Shown: piece after piece, positions 46,773 through 63,910 of the stretch | How positions within the stretch are numbered: position 1 is the first letter of the stretch | How the letters are laid out: each line of letters starts with the position of its first letter | Assembly: GCA_038496445.1 (NCBI GenBank) | Contig: JALMLS010000268.1 | Location: forward strand, 186,001 to 250,000 | DNA length: 64,000 nt | Direction of reading: 5' to 3' | Source: Trichosphaerium sp. ATCC 40318 | Taxonomy: Eukaryota > Protista > Tubulinea | Translations under genes and position numbers: made by a program | The notes under the pieces: model-generated | The model's input: the letters and a program-made list of their open reading frames with translations, nothing else | What the model was told of the DNA's origin: nothing | Databases searched by the model: none

Positions 46773-48347
46773 ATGGATTTCTGTGTTGTATCACTTGAAC
46801 AGGCGATAAAATACTACCACAAGAGGCATGCTCACGAATTCAGTAAAATTACTGCGAAACAGCATGAAACGTTCATAAAACAACTTGAAAACATTGTAAA
46901 TGCTGCAAACAAGCGCTTCTTACAAGAGCTTGATCAACATCTCTTTGGAAACATGGATACTGCCAGCGTGACTAAACAGCGTACAGACAGTTCTAGAGAA
47001 TTGAATGTGCCAAAATATGCCGAAACTGTAGCACAGTTTGAGCCAGAGGACGCACAGTTACCAAAATCCAAGCAAAGAAAGGAGTATGTACTACACACCT
47101 TAATCTTAGTTTGTTTGTCTAATGCTAAAAATAGAAGACAACATTTGACAAACAAAGTGCTTGACATTATTGATTTTCCTCCAGAGGTTATTGCAAATAT
47201 TCTAAATCATACAGATGCAAAATCAAGGTTCAGTGTTGCTCAATCGTGTCATTTGATGGCCGACATTATACATCAAGTTGTTGGATACAAAAAGATTTAC
47301 ATTTATGACATTCCAGATATCATACAGATACGACAGTACAAAGGTGTCATGAACAACACTCTTGTTGTCATGAAGATAGAAAATAATACTTTATTTTCGT
47401 TGTTATCTGGGTGTCGTAACATTGATACAAACTTTCTTAGACGTAGATTTTCAGATTTTGATATAAGTAGTGTTATCAATGATAATGATCTCAAAGCGCT
47501 TGCTGGAGTTCATTATATTTGCCTTCACCGATGTAAACACATAACAGATGAAGGTATCAAGGCATTGAGTGGCGTGCACAAAATTGACCTATCTATGACA
47601 TCAGTATCAGATGATGGAATCAAAGCACTAAAGGGTGTACATGACATAAACCTTGCATGTTGTGACAAAGTGACAGACGAAAGTATCAAAACACTTGCAG
47701 GTGTTCATACAATTTGCCTTTATGAATGTAAATATGTGACAGATGAAAGCATCAAAGCGTTAGTAGGTGTTCATACAATTGTCCTTTCTTACAGTTCAGT
47801 AACAGATAACGGCGTCAAGTTGCTTCAAGGAGTTCACACCATCCACCTCTCCCACACTTCTGTGACAAGTGAAAGTGTCAAAACACTTGCAGGTGTTCAT
47901 ACAATCTACCTTGATGGTACAGCAGTGACAGATGAGGGTATCAAACTACTTTCAGGTGTCCATATCATTGACCTTAAAGACACGCCAGTGACAGATGAGG
48001 GTATCAAAGCGCTCAGAGGTGTACACGCCATTGATCTTACTCGTACTGCAGTGACAGATGAAGGTATCAAAGCACTCAAAGGAGTTTATGCCATTAACCT
48101 TGATGGCACTACAGTTACAGACAAGGGAATCAACGCTCTTACAGGTGTTCATACAATCGGTGTTAGTAATTGTGAACATTTGACAGGCAAAGGTATTAAT
48201 GCACTAACAGGTCTTCATGCAATAGAAATACGTTTTGATTCTTCAACAACACTAGATCGAGTTTGCCATTTTGATGCTCGTGTTGTTGATTACTTTGGGC
48301 AATTTTTATACAATTTATTGAAAGACGAAAACATGTATGTTGTCTAA
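46773..48347 (+). CDS. F-box / leucine-rich repeat protein ('GVHTI.L' repeats) with N-terminal extension
   Basis: IIDFPPEVIANILNH..SRFSVAQSCHLM (F-box) followed by about 12 LRRs VTDEGIKALxGVHxIxL; probable in-frame 51-nt intron 47084..47134 (GTATGT..CTAAT..ATAG). Confidence 0.88.
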   Translation: MDFCVVSLEQAIKYYHKRHAHEFSKITAKQHETFIKQLENIVNAANKRFLQELDQHLFGNMDTASVTKQRTDSSRELNVPKYAETVAQFEPEDAQLPKSKQRKEYVLHTLILVCLSNAKNRRQHLTNKVLDIIDFPPEVIANILNHTDAKSRFSVAQSCHLMADIIHQVVGYKKIYIYDIPDIIQIRQYKGVMNNTLVVMKIENNTLFSLLSGCRNIDTNFLRRRFSDFDISSVINDNDLKALAGVHYICLHRCKHITDEGIKALSGVHKIDLSMTSVSDDGIKALKGVHDINLACCDKVTDESIKTLAGVHTICLYECKYVTDESIKALVGVHTIVLSYSSVTDNGVKLLQGVHTIHLSHTSVTSESVKTLAGVHTIYLDGTAVTDEGIKLLSGVHIIDLKDTPVTDEGIKALRGVHAIDLTRTAVTDEGIKALKGVYAINLDGTTVTDKGINALTGVHTIGVSNCEHLTGKGINALTGLHAIEIRFDSSTTLDRVCHFDARVVDYFGQFLYNLLKDENMYVV

Positions 48348-48413: not shown

Positions 48414-49952
48414 TTACTGGTTTACTGGCTTGTCATTTTGATAAACGGTTTGTACAATCTTGCCAGTGAGTGATTCGAAGGTTTTGTGTAGCCCTTCCTT
48501 GAGGTTGTTAACATATCTACCACACATGCAAACAACACCAGTAGAATGCCACATTGTTACAACTCCTTCAAGTTTACCATCTTTGTAATTAGCCTGCATC
48601 TTTGGTACTCCATTGTCATGCCACTTTCTATATTCCCCTTCAAGTTTGTCATCCACATAATTACAGTGCATAGACACTTTACCATTCTCATAAAACTCCT
48701 TGTACTGTCCTTCGATTTTACCTTCCTTGTAAAAGCAGTGAAGAACCAACAAACCATTTGAATTCCACTTCTTGTACTCCCCTTCGATTGTACCATTCTT
48801 ATAAAAGTAGTGAAGAGCCAACAAGTCATTGTCATGCCACTCTCTGTATTCACCTTCGAGCATGTCATCCACATAATTACAGTGCATAGATACTTTACCA
48901 TTCTCAAAAAACTTCTTGCAATCCCCTTCATTTTTACCATTCTTCTTCGTATTTGTCTGACGCAAATTTCCATTCTCATACCACTCACTGTGCTGGTTTG
49001 CTGTGTCTAGTTTCTGAATGTTTCCATTTGAGTGGTAAAATACTCTGCTGCCTTTAGTATGTTTCATCCACAATTGTCCGTTGTAGTCCCACATTGACAC
49101 ACTTTTATCCTGAAAATTAAAATGAAATTCCAGCTTTCCATTGCTATGCCACTGTTTGCTCTCCATATTGTTTACCATTCTCATATTTGGATTGTGACTT
49201 TATTTTCCCATCATCATACCATTCATTATGTTCACCGTGCTGTATACCATCTAACCACTCACACTGTTCCTTTAGTTGCATATTTTCATGCCATTCACTA
49301 CATTCACCATCTTTTTTGCCATTGACATAGCTGCACAAAAGCTGCGATGTTCCTGACTCTTCATATTGTTGGTGGTACACTCCATTTAACATTCCGTTGG
49401 TATATGTGCAGGTGCTGTTTTGCTGTCCATTTTCATACCATGTGTTGCGTGCTCCTGTTAAAAGGCCGTGTGTGTAGCTACAACGCTCTAAGAGTTGGCC
49501 GCTTTCAAACCATTGTTTGCTCTCACCATGTTTTTTGCCAAGATTCCACGTGGTATGTGACTGAAAGTATCCGTTTTCGAACCATGACTTGCTCTCGCCA
49601 TGCAAAACCCCACAAGAAAAAATTTGCTTCGTTTTAACCTTTCCGTCTTTGTGGAATGTTTGAAACACCCCATCCCGCTCTAGTGCATGAGTATAGCGTG
49701 TTGACCACGCCATACCCTTATTTAACACCGGCCACATCTGATTGATTTGACCAGTTGAGTCTTTTTTTATTATCATATCGTGCAGTTCCAGCGGCAAATC
49801 TATCAAGCGAACAGGAGTATTATCTTGTTTTTTTACCTGAGTGATGAGTTAGATCCAACCGAGTTTGTCTACTCTTTTGAAGTGTGAGTCGGTACCTTTT
49901 TAGGGTGTGGGCCTTTTATTGGACTGGGTTTGCGGGGTTTTTGAGGTTGCAT
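48414..49952 (-). pseudogene. F-box + MORN-variant repeat gene with an internal frameshift (pseudogene or assembly error)
   Basis: Exon 1 MQPQKPRKPSPIKGPHPKK|gtaccg..ctaac..cag|VKKQDNTPVRLIDLPLELHDMII. ORFs 49144..49806 and 48414..49184 join into one repeat array if 2 nt are restored at about 49160 (GGAGAGC vs the expected GGAGAGAGC = GESKQW). Confidence 0.8.
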
Positions 49953-54002: not shown

Positions 54003-57000
54003 ATGCAAGTACACACGAATATATTCCCACAAGAGTTAGACGGAAAGCGCTACAATAAGTTAGTTTCTGTTACTTTACTTCCAGATGCAGGTATTATTGC
54101 GTCTTATAACAAAGCAAACAGGTATGTAAAGAAAAACGGAGAAAGCAGCGGATACGCTTTTGGTTAAAGTAAACCGTGTCGACGCTCAGTTATTGCATTT
54201 TAGATACCTCGTAACTACTGTTGGAGGCGATTGTCAAAAAGAAGTAAAAGGAAAAGGAAACGTTGTATCAATACACGCAAAACTACCTTATATCGTATCC
54301 ATACATGAACTTGGGAGTGTAAGAAGCCTACAACTTTATAACACCGACACGGGGGAACTCAAAGACATTGAACTCAACGGGATTACGCCTTCTGTGGTAC
54401 GTTGTACCAATCCAACGCAATTTCGCGCTCATTAAAAACCAACAATCTAAAACAATAAACAACAAGCGTTAAAATAATAACGCTCCTCTCTAGGTTATAA
54501 CAGATGAGAGTAATTGCATTGTATTTGATGATAAGCACAATGCTTACTGGTTACACTATACAAACCCTAAGCTTGTTCCACACGGAACAATGATACCAAA
54601 CACATCACAAACAAGCAGTTTAACATCTGTAAAGATTGGAACAAGGCTTGTGCTTGGTAGCTTCACACAAACGTCACTTTACGACTTGGAAGAAGATGAA
54701 GTTATAACAACCTTAAAAGCTGATAATAACTTTCTCTTGACTAAAGCATTTGGTATGTATTTATCACGTGTTTTACCTCAAAATTGTGATTGGTTTTTTA
54801 TTATTATTTAATTAAAGCGCTAAAGGCTTCTTTTACTTATATCTGTGTAGGTGATCATGCTATAACAGTGACGTCATCTGAAGTTTTTGTTATAAAAGCA
54901 TCAACTGGACGTAAGTTTTTTTTTTTCTTCGTTGATGTCTATCTTCTGATCATGATGTATAATGGTCTTTTTAGGTACTGTGTCCACGTTGATTGACTCT
55001 CCTATATCTGCTATACAATATGATAATAATAGACAAGTTTTATTCTTGGGTAACTTAGAAGGAGAGATTAGAGCTTATAATATAGACTCTTTGGAGTATT
55101 TATATACTTTGAATCAAGTTGATGTTGCAACACGTAAACTATCCGCAAGAAGTCTAATAACACAACTCACAACCAGAGGTATGTATACTTTTTTTTTTCT
55201 GTTTTTTCAAGTGACCATCGAAGTACTCCTGTTTTTTTCTGATTTTTTTTTTCTCCAAGTGACCATCTTAACGCTTATGCCAAATGGTCTTATTGCTGCT
55301 GGTACAGATAGTGGCACTATAAATATTTATTTAACAAGAAATCAAAATCAACCTGAACCTGTAAAGACACTAAAGATAAACGGAGCGAGCTTCATTTCTT
55401 CCGTATTCCATAAGAAATTGAATGAACTTGCAGTGTTATTCAAAGACGCAGATAAGAAGCTTTCACTCGCCACTTGGAAACCAAAGTTTAGTAAATTATC
55501 ACGACGTGGATCCTCAGAGATTGTTGCTACACAACGCCTAAGCTGTGCAGGATACATGCAAGCACATAAAAGAAGGAAACTACTTAGAAATTCAAAAGAC
55601 GAGTTTTGGTATGAACTAAGAGGAGATGTTTTGTTTTGTTATAGTGCACATACAGTACGAATATATCTAATATTTTCTGATGTTGTTACTAAACACAAAG
55701 AGTAGGAGAAGACTCCATTAGCGAGCTATATGATCACTTCAACTACTACTATAAAGAGAGATAAATCAAAGAGATATCAAGGGCTTGAGATCAAGTTCGA
55801 TAAGACTTCATTGACTCTCATGACCGCCTCAGAAAAAGAACTCATAATGTGGACCACTGCTCTATCAAATGCTGTGCAAGTACGTAAACAACAATTACCA
55901 GTTTAAAATTACTGACACCTTGTCTAGAGCGTTAAAAATAGTTCTATAGGCGAGATTAACCTCAAAGACCTTACATACAAAACAGACTCTGAAGGACAAC
56001 GTATACGCCTTGGTACTCATCTTGCTGACATTGAAACACCTCTTATTCTATAATTTAGGACAAGGTAGTAGCGCTTCAATCTATAGAGGACGCTTCAATG
56101 GATTCGCAGTTGCTATAAAGCAATTTCATTCGAATGTTACAAAAGAAGAATTCAAGAGAGAAGCAGCAATGTTGAGGTACGTTTTTTTGGCTTCATTCCC
56201 AGCCCAATTGGGCTTTAAATTTGCGTGTACTTATGCTTTTAACAAGGGCCCTGCGTCACCCATGTATAGTGCATTTGATTGGGGCTTGCAATAAAGAGGG
56301 TAGCTATGCCCTAGTATTACCATACAAGAAGCACGGTTCACTTCACGAACTTCTTCAAGTTACAAAGTGCGCCAATTTCTCCACCTCTTTCTTTTTTTGT
56401 AATTAACAATTAACTTGTGAATCAAGACCATCTCCATTGAAGACATGGCGGTTCTATCTTAAAATAGTTAATGATATAGCACATGGTACGCAATTCGGAA
56501 AAAAAACAACCAAGAAAAAAAACTGACTTGTTTTATAGCAATGCAGTACCTTCACACATTCCAAATGAATGGACGAAGTACACCTATTATACACCGTGAT
56601 TTGAAGCCAGGAAATATATTGATTAACTCGCTTGATCCAACTCTACACAAACCGAGTATCAAAATAACAGGTTAGTGTGAACTACCGTTTTGTTCTTTTT
56701 TTTGAGTTTTTATTTTCTGACTTTTCCTTTTTTTAAGATTTTGGTATATCCACACAAGCTCGTGAATTACATACAGCTCGACAAGGGACTATGGCTTATA
56801 TGGCACCTGAAGTGTTCGCATCAAGTGACTACAGTACACAAGCTGATGTATACTCTTTTGGTATAGTGCTATGGCAGATGCTCACAAAAAAAGTCCCTAC
56901 ATCACAACTTGGGTACAACTTTCTGCCACGTCCAGCCTTCGTTTCGTTGATCTAACTTCTTTTTTGATAGAGGTGGGCATAAGAGACCTCCTATACCTGT

Positions 57001-60000
57001 ATTCACGCACCCAACAGTTGCTAAGCTTGTCAGAGGTACTGTTCTAGCGATTTAGTTTGTTTTCTAACTTTGTTAATAAAAAGAATGTTGGCAAAGCGAT
57101 CCTGATAAACGACCAACGTTTGCTGATATCATATCTTCTACTGAATCTATAATTGCTGAGTTTATTGTTAACGATACAATGGACACCGAAATAGAAAACA
57201 AAACAATCGCAAGGAGATCCAAGATTTATGGTAGAACCAATTTAATGAAGGTAAGCTTATCTTCCCTCTTATCGTCGTTATACACCTGTTTTGTGTTTGT
57301 CTGACTCTTATTTCAAAGGATACTCTCAAGCTCATTGAGAATTTTAAAGATGGTGAGAAGCAATTCTTGCTTCTGCGTGGATTGTCCGGAATGGGTAAAT
57401 CTATATTTGTATCAATGCTAAGTCGTTATGCTGCGACTCAAGGTCATGTTGGTAATGGCAAATGGAACAAAGGGCTTACTTGTCCTATCGGTCCAATTGC
57501 TGACGCTTTATCGTACGTATTTACATACCTGTTTGCCTTTCGTTAAGCGCTCCAATACTGACTTTAACTGAAGGGATATTGTTCGTTCTATTCAACAGAA
57601 TGCAAGCAAAGTTGAGTTACTAAGGATATGCAATATAATCAAAGCAGAAGTATCTTATAAATCAAGACTACTAATGTATAAGCTATTCCCAGTACTATTA
57701 CATCTTACAGAAGAGGATATTCCAATGGAATCCATAGAAGGCATGATGTGTGGATCGATGCAGGTATTGTTGTTTTTACATCCTCATCTCAACTCACCTC
57801 TCTTCTTTAGCAAGCTTTAGCTCTTTTTAGACTTTTAATTAGCACTCTATCTTCCAAAGAACAACCACTGGTAAGCCACTCATAAGCTCTTACATTAACT
57901 TATGTTATTTTGTAGATTTTTATCTTGGATGATTTACAGTGGGCTGATTTTATGGGTATTTCGTTGATTCAAGAAATCATGTCTTCACCTCAAATGTCGC
58001 ACGTGTTAATCCTTGCAACTTATCGTAGCAACGAGGTTGGTAAAAATCACCCTCTCCGTGTGCGTACTCAAACACACTATCATAGCTATTAGTGTACTAA
58101 CAAATCATTAAATAGGCTGCCTTGACTGCAATAAAAGAGTCTAGAGTTGCTGGTGTACAAGAGATTGTACTACAATCTCTTTCAGATGACGATATTACAG
58201 AATGGCTTCACGATATCATAGGCGAACCAACAACAAGTGTAGAAAAACTGATTGCATTGATTCAAGAAAGGACAGGAGGAAATCCTTTCCTTGTTAGCCA
58301 AACTATTGCTCATCTACTTGAAACAAACGCATTGGAGTTTTACAGCAAGAAATCAAAGGAAAGCGAAGAAACTTACTTGAAAAACCTATCAAACAAACTA
58401 GTTGACTCAAGTATCTTGCTAACAAAGAACATTTCAAAGCTTCGAACTGAAGCTGTAATGTGTCTACAAATAGCAGCTTGTCTAAAAGCAGAACAGTTTA
58501 CTGAATCAAGCATGCATAACTTGATGTCTCACTTCAACATGGTACGTTCTGTTTGTTTTGTTCTTTTTCGATATTTTTTTGGTGTTCACGTGGTGGTTTG
58601 TATTAACTTTTTTATCACGTTTAGGATGTTGAGAACAATGTATTGACGTATACTAAAAAAGCACGTGATTTGCCAAAGAATCAAGTACACAGCTGGTTGG
58701 AAGAAGCCCTTAATATCTCCTTTATCAAAAAGAAGAAGCGTGGTGATGATATCATTGTATTCAGATTTGCTCATGATAAGATTCGTGAAGCTTTGTATGC
58801 TTCTGCTTCTGATAATGATAAACGCCACTTCGCTGTTGGTCAAATTTTAATGGCAGAGTTAGAAGGCGCTAGCGAGATGGTCGTAGGCACAGGTACGAAC
58901 TCATTTAACATGTCTTTTTTTGAACACGTTGTCGAAGCTGAAAGTACTTTTTAGCAATATTCTATGCTGTTGAACAAATGAATCTTGGGTATGATGCAAC
59001 GCCAAAGAGTATGCATACCGAGTTAGCTATTTGTAACCTAAAAGGTACGAAATGGGATTTGCTTGAGATCAAGAGATTAACTCTTTCTTTTTTTCGTTTA
59101 GCTGTAAAAACAGCCGTCTTTCACGCTGCTTATGATACTGCTTTGGAATTCTTGCACAGCGCTTTCAAATTCCTTGGTGTTAAAAAAGGTGATGAGAGTG
59201 TTTGGGAACGCTTAGGGGAGAACGCTTGGTATTTACACAAATACCTTTGCCTCTGCGAACTTAGAACAAGTAAGTTTTTTTGAATGAAAAAACTTTTTGA
59301 GTACTCCTTCGAACAAACGCAAAAACTAGTCCTAAGTGAGATTGTGCCTATTATTTTTATTCACAAATTTGTAGAAAATATGGACGCAGATGCAATGAAG
59401 AGCCTTGAAATACTAATGGCTCATGCAACGACAAACGACCAGAAATCTCATGTTCTCAATCTTCGTTCTGAGGCTGCCTTATCTAGATGGTCTTTCAAGT
59501 GTGTACCACCAATTGTAACAGAGTTCCTCGTACATACTGGTGTACTACAAGAGAAAATCAGCGATTTCTCGGTTTATTCACCACAAGGTGACAAGTTAAA
59601 GGTAACTTTTTTTCTTTTTTTTTTGGAGTTAATGGATTTGTTTTTTAGGCCATGGAAGAACGTGTTCTAAAAAATGTATCCGTTACAGCGTTTAGAAAAC
59701 GTCTAAGGCATCGTGCTAAACTAGAGGAGATTGATTGGAATAAATACTTGATATCCAAGGCCATAAACAACGGATTGATAGCAGGTACTGTTTTTATTTA
59801 CCAAAACAGCTTTCGCTTTACTGATTTCTATTTTTAGCATACTTGAGCGCTAACACTTCCGCCCTGTCTTTCTTCTCTTTACTTGAAATGGAACTATTGC
59901 TCAAAGACAAAGAGTTCCCAGGTCTTGTATCATCTCTTGTATTGACATCTATATATTTTATGCACTACACAGAGAATAGAAGCTTAGCTAGCGTTGGTGT

Positions 60001-62438
60001 TGCTCTTCTAAAATCAGCGAATGAGATTATACTTCGTGGAAATAACTACAACTTTACTGATAACATTGGAATGGGTGAACTCCTGTACTTGAGAATATAC
60101 GGCGCAGCTTGTTTGGATAGAGAGAGTATAATGAATCGCGCTATTAACACCATACACCTCTCCGAAAAGGTAAGACGCTTGCTACTGTTTTACAAAAAAA
60201 TCTAATTATGTTATGTAGGACGGCGATTATAGCATCTTGTTCCAAGCTAAGACTGACATTTCGTACTTTGAATGTTTCTATGGTACAATGCCACCAAGCG
60301 ATCTTCCAGCAGCATTGGAGCCTCTCATTAAAGCATCTGCATCGCCTATGCCAACGTATGCACTATTCTTGTCAATACTAGTAATGATAAAAAACCTAAC
60401 TTATTGTTTAGCTACTCCAAGTTCTTGAAGTCTCAAGCTATAGTTGCTAATGCTTTGTGTGGTCGCTTGACAATATGCGAAGCATATGAATCCATCATAG
60501 AACGTGCTGAACATTACGGTGTAGGAGAATTAACATTGTATGTTTCCCAAATTCTCTATTATTTTCTTTCTTTTTTTTGCCCACACGTGACTAACTCGTT
60601 GTCTTTTAGACATACTTTCCTAACACGTGTAATCCCTGCTACTGTACTACGTAGAGATTGGGAACTAGCATCAAAGTTTATCAACAACCTACGCTTAGAT
60701 ACTTACAAGAGTTGTAATACAATGCTTGTTCTCACTATCATCTACCTTTACGCAACAACATTCACTAAAGAGCTTAAAATCCCACAAAGGTAAGGCACTT
60801 TATCAAAACCAAGATAACAGCACAAGTATATCTAACCGTTCGTCCTCCTTTTTAGCAAGATAACAGCTGTATATCAAACCTTACGTCGGTTTAATCATGG
60901 ACCTATATACAAGCTTGTTCAAAGCCTTATTAAGGTTCAACGTGGTGTTTATAGGAAGAAAGGAAAACCACGTGAGATGTCTTCTGTAATGCAAGTTGTT
61001 GGAAAATATGAAACTCATCGTGCTGCATTTGAAGAGTATGGATGGCAAAAGTTTACAGTTTTCTTATGTGATATTGCTGCACATTTTTGTTATCAACATA
61101 AATCTCACCATTTTGGTGATACTTTCCGAAACGTACGTCATATCATACATCTATCACATGTTTTTCTTTTATCTTATATTATTACTATAGCAAGCTATAA
61201 ATAGCGTACAAATGATTGATACACAACTTGAGTACATTTGGTAAGTCACAAAGAAGGTCTTTCTTCTTGAACTATTTTTTTGACTTTTGGTTTTAGGCAA
61301 ATTGAGTCTGATGGCTTGACATCTTTGGTTGAACATAACTCGACGTTTACGCAAACTATCGCTCATTTGGTATCTACTGCAGCAAAAGGTAGATTGGAAA
61401 AAGAGGAATCGAGCAACACAGAGCTTAGAATGTGGTTAGACCTCCTGACTTCATCACCTGATGAAAATACGTAAGTTTTTGGTATTCATTTGTGACTCTT
61501 TCTTGTTACTCACCAGACTCTCATAGCGAGGTTATACTCTGTCCAAAAGCTCTCGTTGAGAGCGCCATAGAAGTGATGCGAAGCAATTACCCTGGCGCTA
61601 TAGAGCTCATCTGGGAGTCTAATATGGCAAATAAGATAATGACAAACCAACGTCACGTGCTCTTATTATGTGTGTACATGCTACAACAATACTTGGAACA
61701 AATAGAAGGCGATGACATTCTTGTAATGGTCAATAGGTACCTATTATACAACCACAACACATATTATTCGTTGGATCTAACCGATATTTTTCTTTAGTAC
61801 TGATAACGGTATGATAATACAATTTACTGATTTTGTGCCTGATGATATCTCCTTGATAAAGACAGGTTAGTAATGACATCATATCCATCATGAATTAGCC
61901 CTAACATATCTAGACACATTATATACAATCGGTTCACCACCACCAGAGCTTTCAATGCCATTTATCCAACACGCTATCCCAGGTACTTCACAATGAATAA
62001 TTGACACGTTTTTTCTTTTTTTTTTGTGTTTTTCTTTTTTTTGAAACTAACACGTGTGTAGGTATAAAGGCGCTCGAAGAAATAAGATACTTGGTTGATA
62101 ACAACTCACCTATACTACAAGCAAAGCTTAAATTCAGTGTTGTACCACCATGCCCAATATCGTTAATGATATCCAACCCAATGTGGAGAAAGTTGGCTAC
62201 AAATGCATTGGATAAAGCTGGGATTGATTATAGTACATCCAAACATGATGATGGTTATGACTCAACTTGTTGGGTTATAACAGATACTATTTCAGAGACA
62301 CAGAATATTCCTCCTTTGGCAAGTATTATTTTTCTGGCAAAAAGAATAGAAAATGATATTCCTGATCCTCCTGCAACTACTTTAGTGTCACCGATAGATT
62401 ATAACTATATGGTGAAAATGATTACCACCAGTTTGTAA
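54003..62438 (+). CDS. giant multidomain kinase: WD40-like propeller - PH - TKL kinase - COG3899-type STAND NTPase - helical repeats - degenerate histidine kinase - degenerate receiver
   Basis: WD-like LFLGNLEGEIRAY and IAAGTDSGTINIY. PH: CAGYMQ..FWYELRGDVLFCY..ELIMWTTAL. Kinase: LGQGSSASIY, VAIKQF, HRDLKPGN, DFG, GTMAYMAPE, DVYSFG, CWQSDPDKRPTF. STAND: IYGR, GLSGMGKS, ILDDLQWAD, ATYRSNEV, RTGGNPF, FAHDKIREALY. About 30 GT-AG introns. Confidence 0.85.
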
Positions 62439-63016: not shown

Positions 63017-63910
63017 TTAACTGTTGACTTTTTTACCGTATCTGTAATAACTAGTTGTGGTAACTACACTTTCATTTTTATACTTATATGTCACGTGTTT
63101 ACCATGTATTCTATTCATATCATAGAAACAATGAACATATATTCTTCCATCTTGTCCGAAATAATGTTTATATTCTCCATGTTTCTTACCATCTTTAAAG
63201 TGACAACAAAGTACCAAGATACCAAACTGATTCCACTTTTTATACTCACCATTCTTTTGACCATCAACAAAATAAGTCATAGACTTTAACCTTGTACTGC
63301 TCCACCACTCTCTCTTTAAACCTTCAGGTTTGTTCATATTATAATTGCAGTGTACTTGTAAGAAATGAATAGCTGTCTTAGCACTATATTTAGTAATACC
63401 ATAGAGTTTATAGTCACCGTGTTTCATCCCATTTTTATAAAACAAATGTTTAATCAAGAAACCATTCTGACTCTCTTTGTACTCTCCATGTAATTGACCA
63501 TCTTTATAAGTTTTTAAAAGTTCTACTTTATCTCTAGAATAAGTATGAGTGCCATGTGGTACTCCATCTTTGAAGTGTTTTGTCATAAACAGCTTGTTAT
63601 TGTCATATTGTTTATCAACTTGTAATAATCCTGAAGAGTACTGTTGCTCTATGCGATGTACAAAACCACGAGCCTTCTTGTTGTAAGTGATGAAAAGACC
63701 ATGTTTTCTGAGGTTTGAATCGTATTTTGATGTCATAGCTGTCTGCTTGCATATTGAAGGCCATTTACTCTTTAAAACGCTATCAGCGGTGTCTTTAAAC
63801 ATCATCCAAAGGAGTTCTGGAGGTAAGTCAACTAAACAAGGATATTCTCTTTCTCGACGCTCGGTAGAGATACTTTTAACGTTGTACTGTGCGCTGGCAG
63901 GAAAGCTCAT
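63017..63910 (-). CDS. degenerate F-box + MORN-variant repeat protein
   Basis: CLVDLPPELLWMMF..WPSICKQTA..YDSNLRKHG, then repeats YKDGQLHGEYKE and FKDGKKHGEYKHY; single ORF. Confidence 0.85.
   Translation of the reverse strand: MSFPASAQYNVKSISTERREREYPCLVDLPPELLWMMFKDTADSVLKSKWPSICKQTAMTSKYDSNLRKHGLFITYNKKARGFVHRIEQQYSSGLLQVDKQYDNNKLFMTKHFKDGVPHGTHTYSRDKVELLKTYKDGQLHGEYKESQNGFLIKHLFYKNGMKHGDYKLYGITKYSAKTAIHFLQVHCNYNMNKPEGLKREWWSSTRLKSMTYFVDGQKNGEYKKWNQFGILVLCCHFKDGKKHGEYKHYFGQDGRIYVHCFYDMNRIHGKHVTYKYKNESVVTTTSYYRYGKKVNS

Follow-up and report, generated by a model that had tools for sequence, protein, structure and literature searches.

We analysed a window of 64,000 nucleotides from Trichosphaerium sp. 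ATCC 40318 (contig JALMLS010000268.1, positions 186,001 to 250,000 of the forward strand; all positions below are those of the window). A previous sequence-only reading had described a fusion of a signalling kinase with a STAND NTPase at 54003-62438. We found one continuous gene on the plus strand there, running from an ATG at 54003 to a TAA at 62436-62438 and encoding 2,109 amino acids (aa) with no internal stop. From the N-terminus, the predicted protein has a WD40-like propeller region, a plausible PH domain, a TKL-type kinase, an AAA_16 STAND ATPase, a helical arm and a C-terminal part that is most likely a decayed histidine kinase. The gene consists of 35 exons and 34 introns. All introns are GT-AG, are 45-98 nt long and follow the consensus GTAYGT...YAG. 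Three-frame translation showed a chain of open pieces along the plus strand, and an in-frame TAA lies immediately upstream of the ATG. The genome is eukaryotic, 70 Mb in size, and has short introns.

The gene model was first drafted by dynamic programming and then curated by hand; the kinase N-lobe was corrected and a 60-nt exon (57811-57870) was added. All exons are on the plus strand. Exons 1-9 are 54003-54121, 54204-54396, 54494-54752, 54851-54910, 54975-55178, 55260-55654, 55706-55879, 55928-56012 and 56059-56176. Exons 10-18 are 56247-56366, 56427-56485, 56539-56670, 56738-56912, 56971-57035, 57084-57250, 57319-57512, 57574-57763 and 57811-57870. Exons 19-27 are 57916-58059, 58116-58541, 58625-58892, 58955-59269, 59330-59601, 59649-59784, 59838-60169, 60219-60355 and 60412-60537. 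Exons 28-35 are 60610-60789, 60856-61132, 61191-61240, 61297-61470, 61527-61736, 61798-61865, 61914-61982 and 62062-62438. The features described below are also on the plus strand.

The kinase domain (56009..57250, aa 496-about 745) is spread over eight exons. Its catalytic motifs are complete: a G-loop (56009-56090), VAIK (56109-56120), HRDLKPGN (56592-56615), a DFG split by an intron (56670 + 56738-56745) and APE (56803-56811). Subdomain XI carries CWQSDPDKRPTF (57086-57121), a CW-x-x-DP-x-x-RP-x-F motif. Pfam, which was run exon by exon and not on the spliced protein, matched the domain with Pkinase and PK_Tyr_Ser-Thr at E values down to 4e-13. The best PDB relatives were TAK1, ZAK, DLK, MLK and BRAF for one kinase exon, RET, MET and TNNI3K for another, and KIT, ABL, ZAK and RIPK4 for a further one. 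No bacterial kinase was near the top of the PDB matches of these three exons. By its motifs, the kinase is catalytically intact and of the eukaryotic TK/TKL type, as the sequence-only reading had proposed.

The kinase is followed by the core of an AAA_16 STAND NTPase (57221..58059, aa 766-971), which includes the small exon 57811-57870. The core contains the start motif YGR (57221-57235), the Walker A motif GLSGMGKS (57379-57402), the Walker B motif ILDDLQWAD (57922-57948) and ATYRSNEV (58015-58038). The winged-helix/arm region of the STAND module, delimited by family alignment, lies at 58116..58892 (aa 972-1202) and contains TGGNPF (58272-58289) and FAHDKIRE (58766-58789). Every motif named in the sequence-only reading (VAIK, HRDLKPGN, DFG, APE, GLSGMGKS, ILDDLQWAD, TGGNPF and FAHDKIRE) was thereby located in the spliced exons. 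Pfam AAA_16 matched the P-loop exon at E 2.2e-5 and the Walker B exon at E 2.5e-4. NACHT matched the same P-loop exon at E 0.093 only, and an NTPase of the NLR type (NACHT or NB-ARC) was rejected on this comparison.

The relatives of the STAND module were searched with the 142-aa exon 58116-58541 as probe against 1.84 billion representative proteins. This search gave 77 hits (best E 9e-8, 31-37% identity), all of them AAA_16-family proteins, and neither the protein itself nor an orthologue was among them. In most hits, the match lay at residues 500-630 of a protein of 1,700-2,200 aa. The Pfam order of the relatives was Pkinase-AAA_16-(TPR_CHK1)-GAF-(PAS)-HisKA-HATPase_c, and REC or Hpt was present in some and absent from others; SpoIIE occurred in a single protein, as did a cyclase. 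The named relatives were all bacterial (cyanobacteria, Leptospirales, Chloroflexota and Pseudomonas), and one was annotated as 'trifunctional serine/threonine-protein kinase/ATP-binding protein/sensor histidine kinase'.

A family hidden Markov model (HMM) was built from 36 full-length hits, all Ser/Thr-kinase/AAA_16/GAF/His-kinase proteins. It matched aa 765-1355 collinearly at E 1.8e-81. The match covered the ATPase, the arm and the first helical repeats, every family motif aligned, and the alignment ran to aa 1355, into the TPR region of the family. The same HMM matched the kinase at aa 500-693 (E 1.7e-23), in the family order. The kinase was 25-30% identical to the kinases of the bacterial family, and the family's characteristic activation-segment motif was not found in the HMM alignment. 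By this alignment, the ATPase and the first part of the helical arm are homologous to the kinase-AAA_16-His-kinase family, and the COG3899/AAA_16 assignment made from the sequence alone held. A eukaryotic TKL kinase occupies the position of the family's own kinase. The simplest reading would be a domain swap, or that the STAND part became fused C-terminally to a kinase already present.

The region behind the arm (58955..61132, aa 1203-1794) is helical and TPR-like. Exon-by-exon Pfam gave no match from aa 1203 to the C-terminal end. The Pfam TPR_CHK1 profile was silent in this genome and also in all 14 control genomes, and is hence uninformative. GAF, whose absence had been remarked on earlier, was not matched by Pfam on any exon; hhalign against the family GAF columns scored 15.0-15.7, which is the control level. 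No protein length is left over for such a domain.

The kinase is preceded by about 470 residues that are foreign to the family. The first 373 of these (54003..55543) form a predicted WD40-like beta-propeller region. Pfam matches were weak (E 0.11-0.2), all to WD40 propeller families. An AlphaFold model of exon 55262-55654, folded together with the paralogue described below, was all-beta with a predicted local distance difference test score (pLDDT) of 70.5; it had two four-stranded blades with pLDDT 73-82 over the blades, and only these two blades were modelled. With this model as query, the best 50 PDB matches in Foldseek were all WD40 propellers (E 1.6e-3 to 1e-2). The modelled exon thus has four-stranded blades of the WD40 type, in agreement with the propeller proposed earlier. 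The 81-nt intron 55179-55259 is in frame and stop-free; its retention would add 27 residues to the propeller region and keep the frame.

A PH domain is plausible at aa 374-468 (55544..55879), where it is split by intron 55655-55705. For the PH domain of the sequence-only reading, Pfam backed the C-terminal half at 19.2 bits (E 0.0018), below the cut-off of 25.1 because the exon holds only half of the domain; the first half showed the expected pattern and weak PDB profile matches to PH domains (E ~0.9). The conserved Trp is present in the C-terminal helix, and the loop between beta1 and beta2 has a basic sequence (HKRRKLLRNSK), which would fit lipid binding. When the propeller/PH alignment was used to scan metagenomes, no relative came up.

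The same genome contains a full-length paralogue on the minus strand of a second contig (G000:C130:100472-108669(-)). It has the same domain order and is collinear from the first Met, which aligns with the start Met of the window protein, to the C-terminus. The best other match of the kinase exon in the genome was on this contig, adjoining the genome's best AAA_16 match. The exon model of the paralogue is rough, and the automatic model missed the exon with YRDLKPG. The paralogue retains the catalytic Lys, DFG, APE and Walker A and B, with YRD instead of HRD. Identity between the two proteins was highest in the kinase (42%), followed by AAA_16 (35%), PH (34%), the tail (31%) and the propeller (28%); all other regions had 19-24%. 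At least 11 of the 34 introns agree in position and phase, and they are found in every module. The tail of the paralogue is about 35 aa shorter.

The propeller/PH exon and the P-loop exon each occur in exactly two copies in the genome. Further members were sought among AAA_16, kinase, HATPase_c and REC loci on 16 contigs (C62, C75, C162, C133, C10, C9, C234, C48, C13, C17, C49, C19, C140, C29, C42 and C47), and none of these loci was a member. The sequences point to a two-gene family that arose by an old duplication of an already complete architecture and was kept under selection. We regard the family as old and maintained because the domain order is the same and 11 of the 34 introns are common to both genes.

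The C-terminal 315 residues were compared with the His-kinase part of the bacterial family. A test profile of aa 1795-2109 was made from two sequences, the window protein and its paralogue. In hhalign, it aligned collinearly with the HisKA+HATPase_c columns of the family over 187 columns, with a score of 20.4. The alignment places a HisKA-like helical segment at 61191..61470 (aa 1795-1868), in which SLVEHNSTF (61322-61348) holds a candidate H-box His. A putative HATPase_c-like remnant follows at 61527..62156 (aa 1869-2016). Its N-box position (YMLQQYLEQ, 61675-61701) is without the Asn, and its G1 position (QFTDFVPDD, 61820-61846) is without the glycines. Neither of the two proteins has the N-box Asn, the G1 glycines or the G2 box in the alignment; the DFVPD motif is kept in the paralogue. 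A language-model feature search (Atlas) placed exon 61528-61734 beside a cluster of HATPase_c proteins (0.90); other His-kinase clusters followed at ~0.80. The profile score and these features fit a relic fold and not a working domain. Most likely, the last 315 residues are a decayed HisKA+HATPase_c module without the phospho-acceptor His and without the ATP-binding N, G1 and G2 residues; we favour this reading because of the weak profile signal and the position in the protein. Of the degenerate two-component module seen by the sequence-only reading, the loss of catalytic residues was borne out, and its identity as a His-kinase relic is an interpretation of a weak profile signal.

The pseudo-receiver that had been placed in the C-terminal tail (62157..62438, aa 2017-2109) found no such backing. 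In hhalign, the tail scored 15.2 against REC, equal to the controls. An AlphaFold model of the last exon from a two-row alignment had pLDDT 46. The feature search gave receiver-like clusters at 0.83 and 0.76 for the window tail, and noise for the shorter tail of the paralogue. No Pfam or PDB-profile match to a receiver was found.

Other STAND and His-kinase genes were seen in the genome. On contig C62 (~92000-97000, plus strand), two class III adenylate/guanylate cyclase-like domains precede an AAA_16 ATPase (P-loop, Walker B and GGNPLF) and a helical region. This gene was considered as a member of the kinase family and rejected; it is a different STAND fusion. Several hybrid histidine kinases of the ordinary kind, which match HATPase_c and receiver profiles well, are present on contigs C245, C214, C159, C250/C338/C83, C13, C17 and C49. 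The genome therefore has a working two-component system beside the apparently decayed one. Contigs C250, C338 and C83 gave identical matches, as did C42 and C47, and may represent duplicates or haplotypes. The nearest downstream neighbour of the window gene carries MORN repeats and is encoded on the other strand (63017-63910, minus). This gene and those at 48414-49806 (minus) and 46773-48347 (plus) are of two kinds: MORN-repeat genes of one exon, in some of which the N-terminus is F-box-like, and an F-box/leucine-rich-repeat gene. The MORN-repeat and F-box neighbours are unrelated to the kinase-STAND gene.

Taken together, these findings make it probable that the locus is one gene for a cytosolic signalling protein of 2,109 aa, a eukaryotic offshoot of the kinase-AAA_16-TPR-GAF-HisKA-HATPase_c(-REC) family in which a TKL kinase is in place and the His-kinase output has decayed. 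Several observations weigh against parts of this reading. The exon model is computational only. A retrained model recovered 32 of the 34 introns and proposed three alternatives, with splice sites at 59045-59101, 59270-59374 and 61471-61583. The TKL kinase may have replaced the ancestral family kinase or may simply have diverged from it. The remaining objections concern the C-terminus. Its last 711 residues had no match by Pfam, the family HMM or pairwise phmmer; a PDB profile search with the tail alignment gave no match, and a homologous-protein search with the last exon gave no candidate. The hhalign match to HisKA+HATPase_c had P 0.026 and a probability of 1-2%. The His of SLVEHNSTF is not conserved, as the paralogue has no His there in the pair alignment. 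These points would be expected if the protein and its switch logic were the same but the last 315 residues were a lineage-specific domain of other origin, an account that is possible but rather unlikely. The ancestor would then have combined kinase, AAA_16 and TPR and had no His-kinase output, as is also the case in some bacterial proteins; among the 77 relatives, several have lengths of 1,000-1,400 aa and may be without a His kinase. The receiver-like tail, which scored at control level and is truncated in the paralogue, fits such an origin as well. However, HisKA+HATPase_c scored best of the seven family modules; the kinase, AAA, TPR, GAF and REC columns, used as controls, gave 11.7-15.2. 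None of 120 column shuffles of the C-terminal profile reached 20.4 (10.8 +/- 1.6, maximum 17.1), but shuffling also breaks local structure, so the observed score is flattered by this comparison. Against a combined HK-REC alignment, 2 of 120 shuffles reached the observed score. The alignment is collinear, with the H, N, G1 and G2 positions in the right order and spacing, the independent feature search points to HATPase_c, and the region occupies the exact place of the family's His kinase. On this evidence, a decayed His kinase is the more probable origin.

Two further explanations would deny the fusion or its activity, and both appear very improbable. In one, the purely computational model merges two or more adjacent genes, such as one for propeller, PH and kinase and another for the STAND part, and no fusion protein exists. 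The coding pieces are never more than 98 nt apart, however, and the junction between kinase and ATPase is a 68-nt intron. The order recurs at the second locus on a different contig, with intron positions common to both genes across the junctions, and the bacterial relatives hold kinase and AAA_16 in one protein at the same spacing. In the other, the protein is a decaying or non-enzymatic scaffold, either an adaptor only or a pseudogene, with its kinase or ATPase inactive despite the motifs. The C-terminal module is clearly without its catalytic residues, and in fungi, the kinase-related domain of proteins from the wider family is probably inactive (PMC6324907). Against this, the frame is open through 35 exons, the window gene has all its kinase and Walker motifs intact, the paralogue keeps them (with YRD for HRD), and the kinase and the ATPase are the best-conserved parts between the two proteins. 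An old duplication of the complete architecture counts against both a mis-joined model and a pseudogene.

If the protein is such a single-gene offshoot of the family, a nucleotide-switched kinase would be its most likely mechanism. In STAND ATPases, the ADP state is closed and the ATP state is open and self-associates, and C-terminal repeats govern the switch between the two. By analogy with these enzymes, the helical arm and the C-terminal relic would keep the ATPase closed at rest, and the two would act together as a sensor or autoinhibitor. Binding of a ligand or partner to the helical/C-terminal part may then lead to nucleotide exchange and self-association. Self-association would bring the TKL kinase domains together for trans-autophosphorylation. 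Ser/Thr phosphorylation would replace the lost His-Asp phosphorelay as output; it is the likeliest output because the nucleotide motifs and the kinase are intact and best conserved, whereas the two-component residues are gone. The predicted PH domain and propeller may set location and partners. A role in immunity or stress is possible.

Members of the kinase-AAA_16-His-kinase family occur widely among bacteria and fungi, and the mechanism of the family is poorly understood, in particular the role of the N-terminal kinase and the coupling of the ATPase to the output. The window gene and its paralogue appear to be a natural variant in which the two-component output was given up and an intact kinase of eukaryotic type was kept. 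This predicts that the ATPase can drive a Ser/Thr kinase directly, and the protein would offer a simple test system for STAND-controlled kinase activation. Other His-kinase scaffolds turned to Ser/Thr signalling are the plant phytochromes and ethylene receptors (PMC6324907), to which the present case would be added. Its importance is evolutionary and mechanistic rather than fundamental, and hinges on expression and activity. A bolder proposal, which we consider improbable, is that both genes represent a protist-specific class of NLR-like intracellular sensors, in which a captured bacterial His-kinase STAND chassis had its phosphorelay silenced and a eukaryotic propeller-PH-TKL module, a Ser/Thr-kinase effector activated by induced proximity, installed at membranes. 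If true, immunity or stress signalling would have gained a 'STAND receptor plus death-kinase-like output' by independent invention.

Proteins with a kinase, an AAA_16 STAND module and helical repeats, often with a His kinase at the end, are already known from bacteria, fungi (group X), Amoebozoa and Klebsormidium (PMC6324907). What is new here is that the kinase in this place is TKL-type, that a propeller and a PH domain extend the N-terminus, that GAF is lost and that the His kinase appears to be silenced. The domain order, described as unfamiliar in the sequence-only reading, was also unmatched in our search: none of the 77 nearest relatives had the propeller-PH extension or the whole order, as far as single-exon probes of limited reach can detect. 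Rarity is not established by this result, because the probes were single exons that do not reach eukaryotic proteins in full length, and the STAND exon fails to detect even the paralogue in the same genome.

One of the closest known systems is the bacterial trifunctional kinase of the cyanobacterial HstK type. In both, the kinase lies directly N-terminal to the AAA_16 ATPase at the same spacing, the ATPase and arm carry the motifs YGR, GK-x, DDLQWAD, YR-x-x-EV, GGNPF and F-x-HD, and a helical region follows the ATPase. The window protein differs in its TK/TKL-type kinase, which is 25-30% identical to the family kinases, in the ~470 aa of propeller and PH added at its N-terminus, in the absence of GAF and in a His-kinase module that is at most a relic. 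Its gene also differs in having 34 spliceosomal introns.

The group X hybrid histidine kinases, found in fungi (S. pombe Mak2/Mak3 and C. albicans Chk1) and reported from Amoebozoa and Klebsormidium as well, have GAF and a working HisKA-HATPase_c-REC output, and their kinase-related domain is the degenerate part (PMC6324907). Group X represents the eukaryotic side of the same architecture: a domain related to Ser/Thr kinases comes first, an ATPase and helical repeats follow, and a His kinase and receiver form the C-terminus. The roles are inverted in the window protein, in which the kinase is intact by its motifs and the two-component part degenerate, and the descriptions of group X set the two apart on this point. 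No group X protein was among the named nearest relatives of the STAND exon.

The PknK type of M. tuberculosis comprises kinase-AAA_16-TPR regulators without a His kinase. It resembles the reading proposed for the window protein in that a MalT/AAA_16-type STAND module, with helical repeats at the C-terminus, has a Ser/Thr kinase as its output; PknK differs in being bacterial, in its Pkinase-type kinase and in having neither propeller nor PH. Two further likenesses are functional analogies only. The ROCO/LRRK kinases have the order Roc GTPase-COR-TKL kinase-WD40 and, like the predicted window protein, unite a TKL kinase, a WD40 propeller and an intramolecular nucleotide switch within a single large protein of the cytosol. 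The switch of the window protein is an AAA_16 STAND ATPase rather than a Roc GTPase with COR, the domain order is another, and Pfam matched no Roc, COR or LRR on the exons of the gene. STAND receptors of the NLR type share the succession of effector, STAND NTPase and C-terminal repeats, but the NTPase of the window protein is of the AAA_16 type and not NACHT or NB-ARC.

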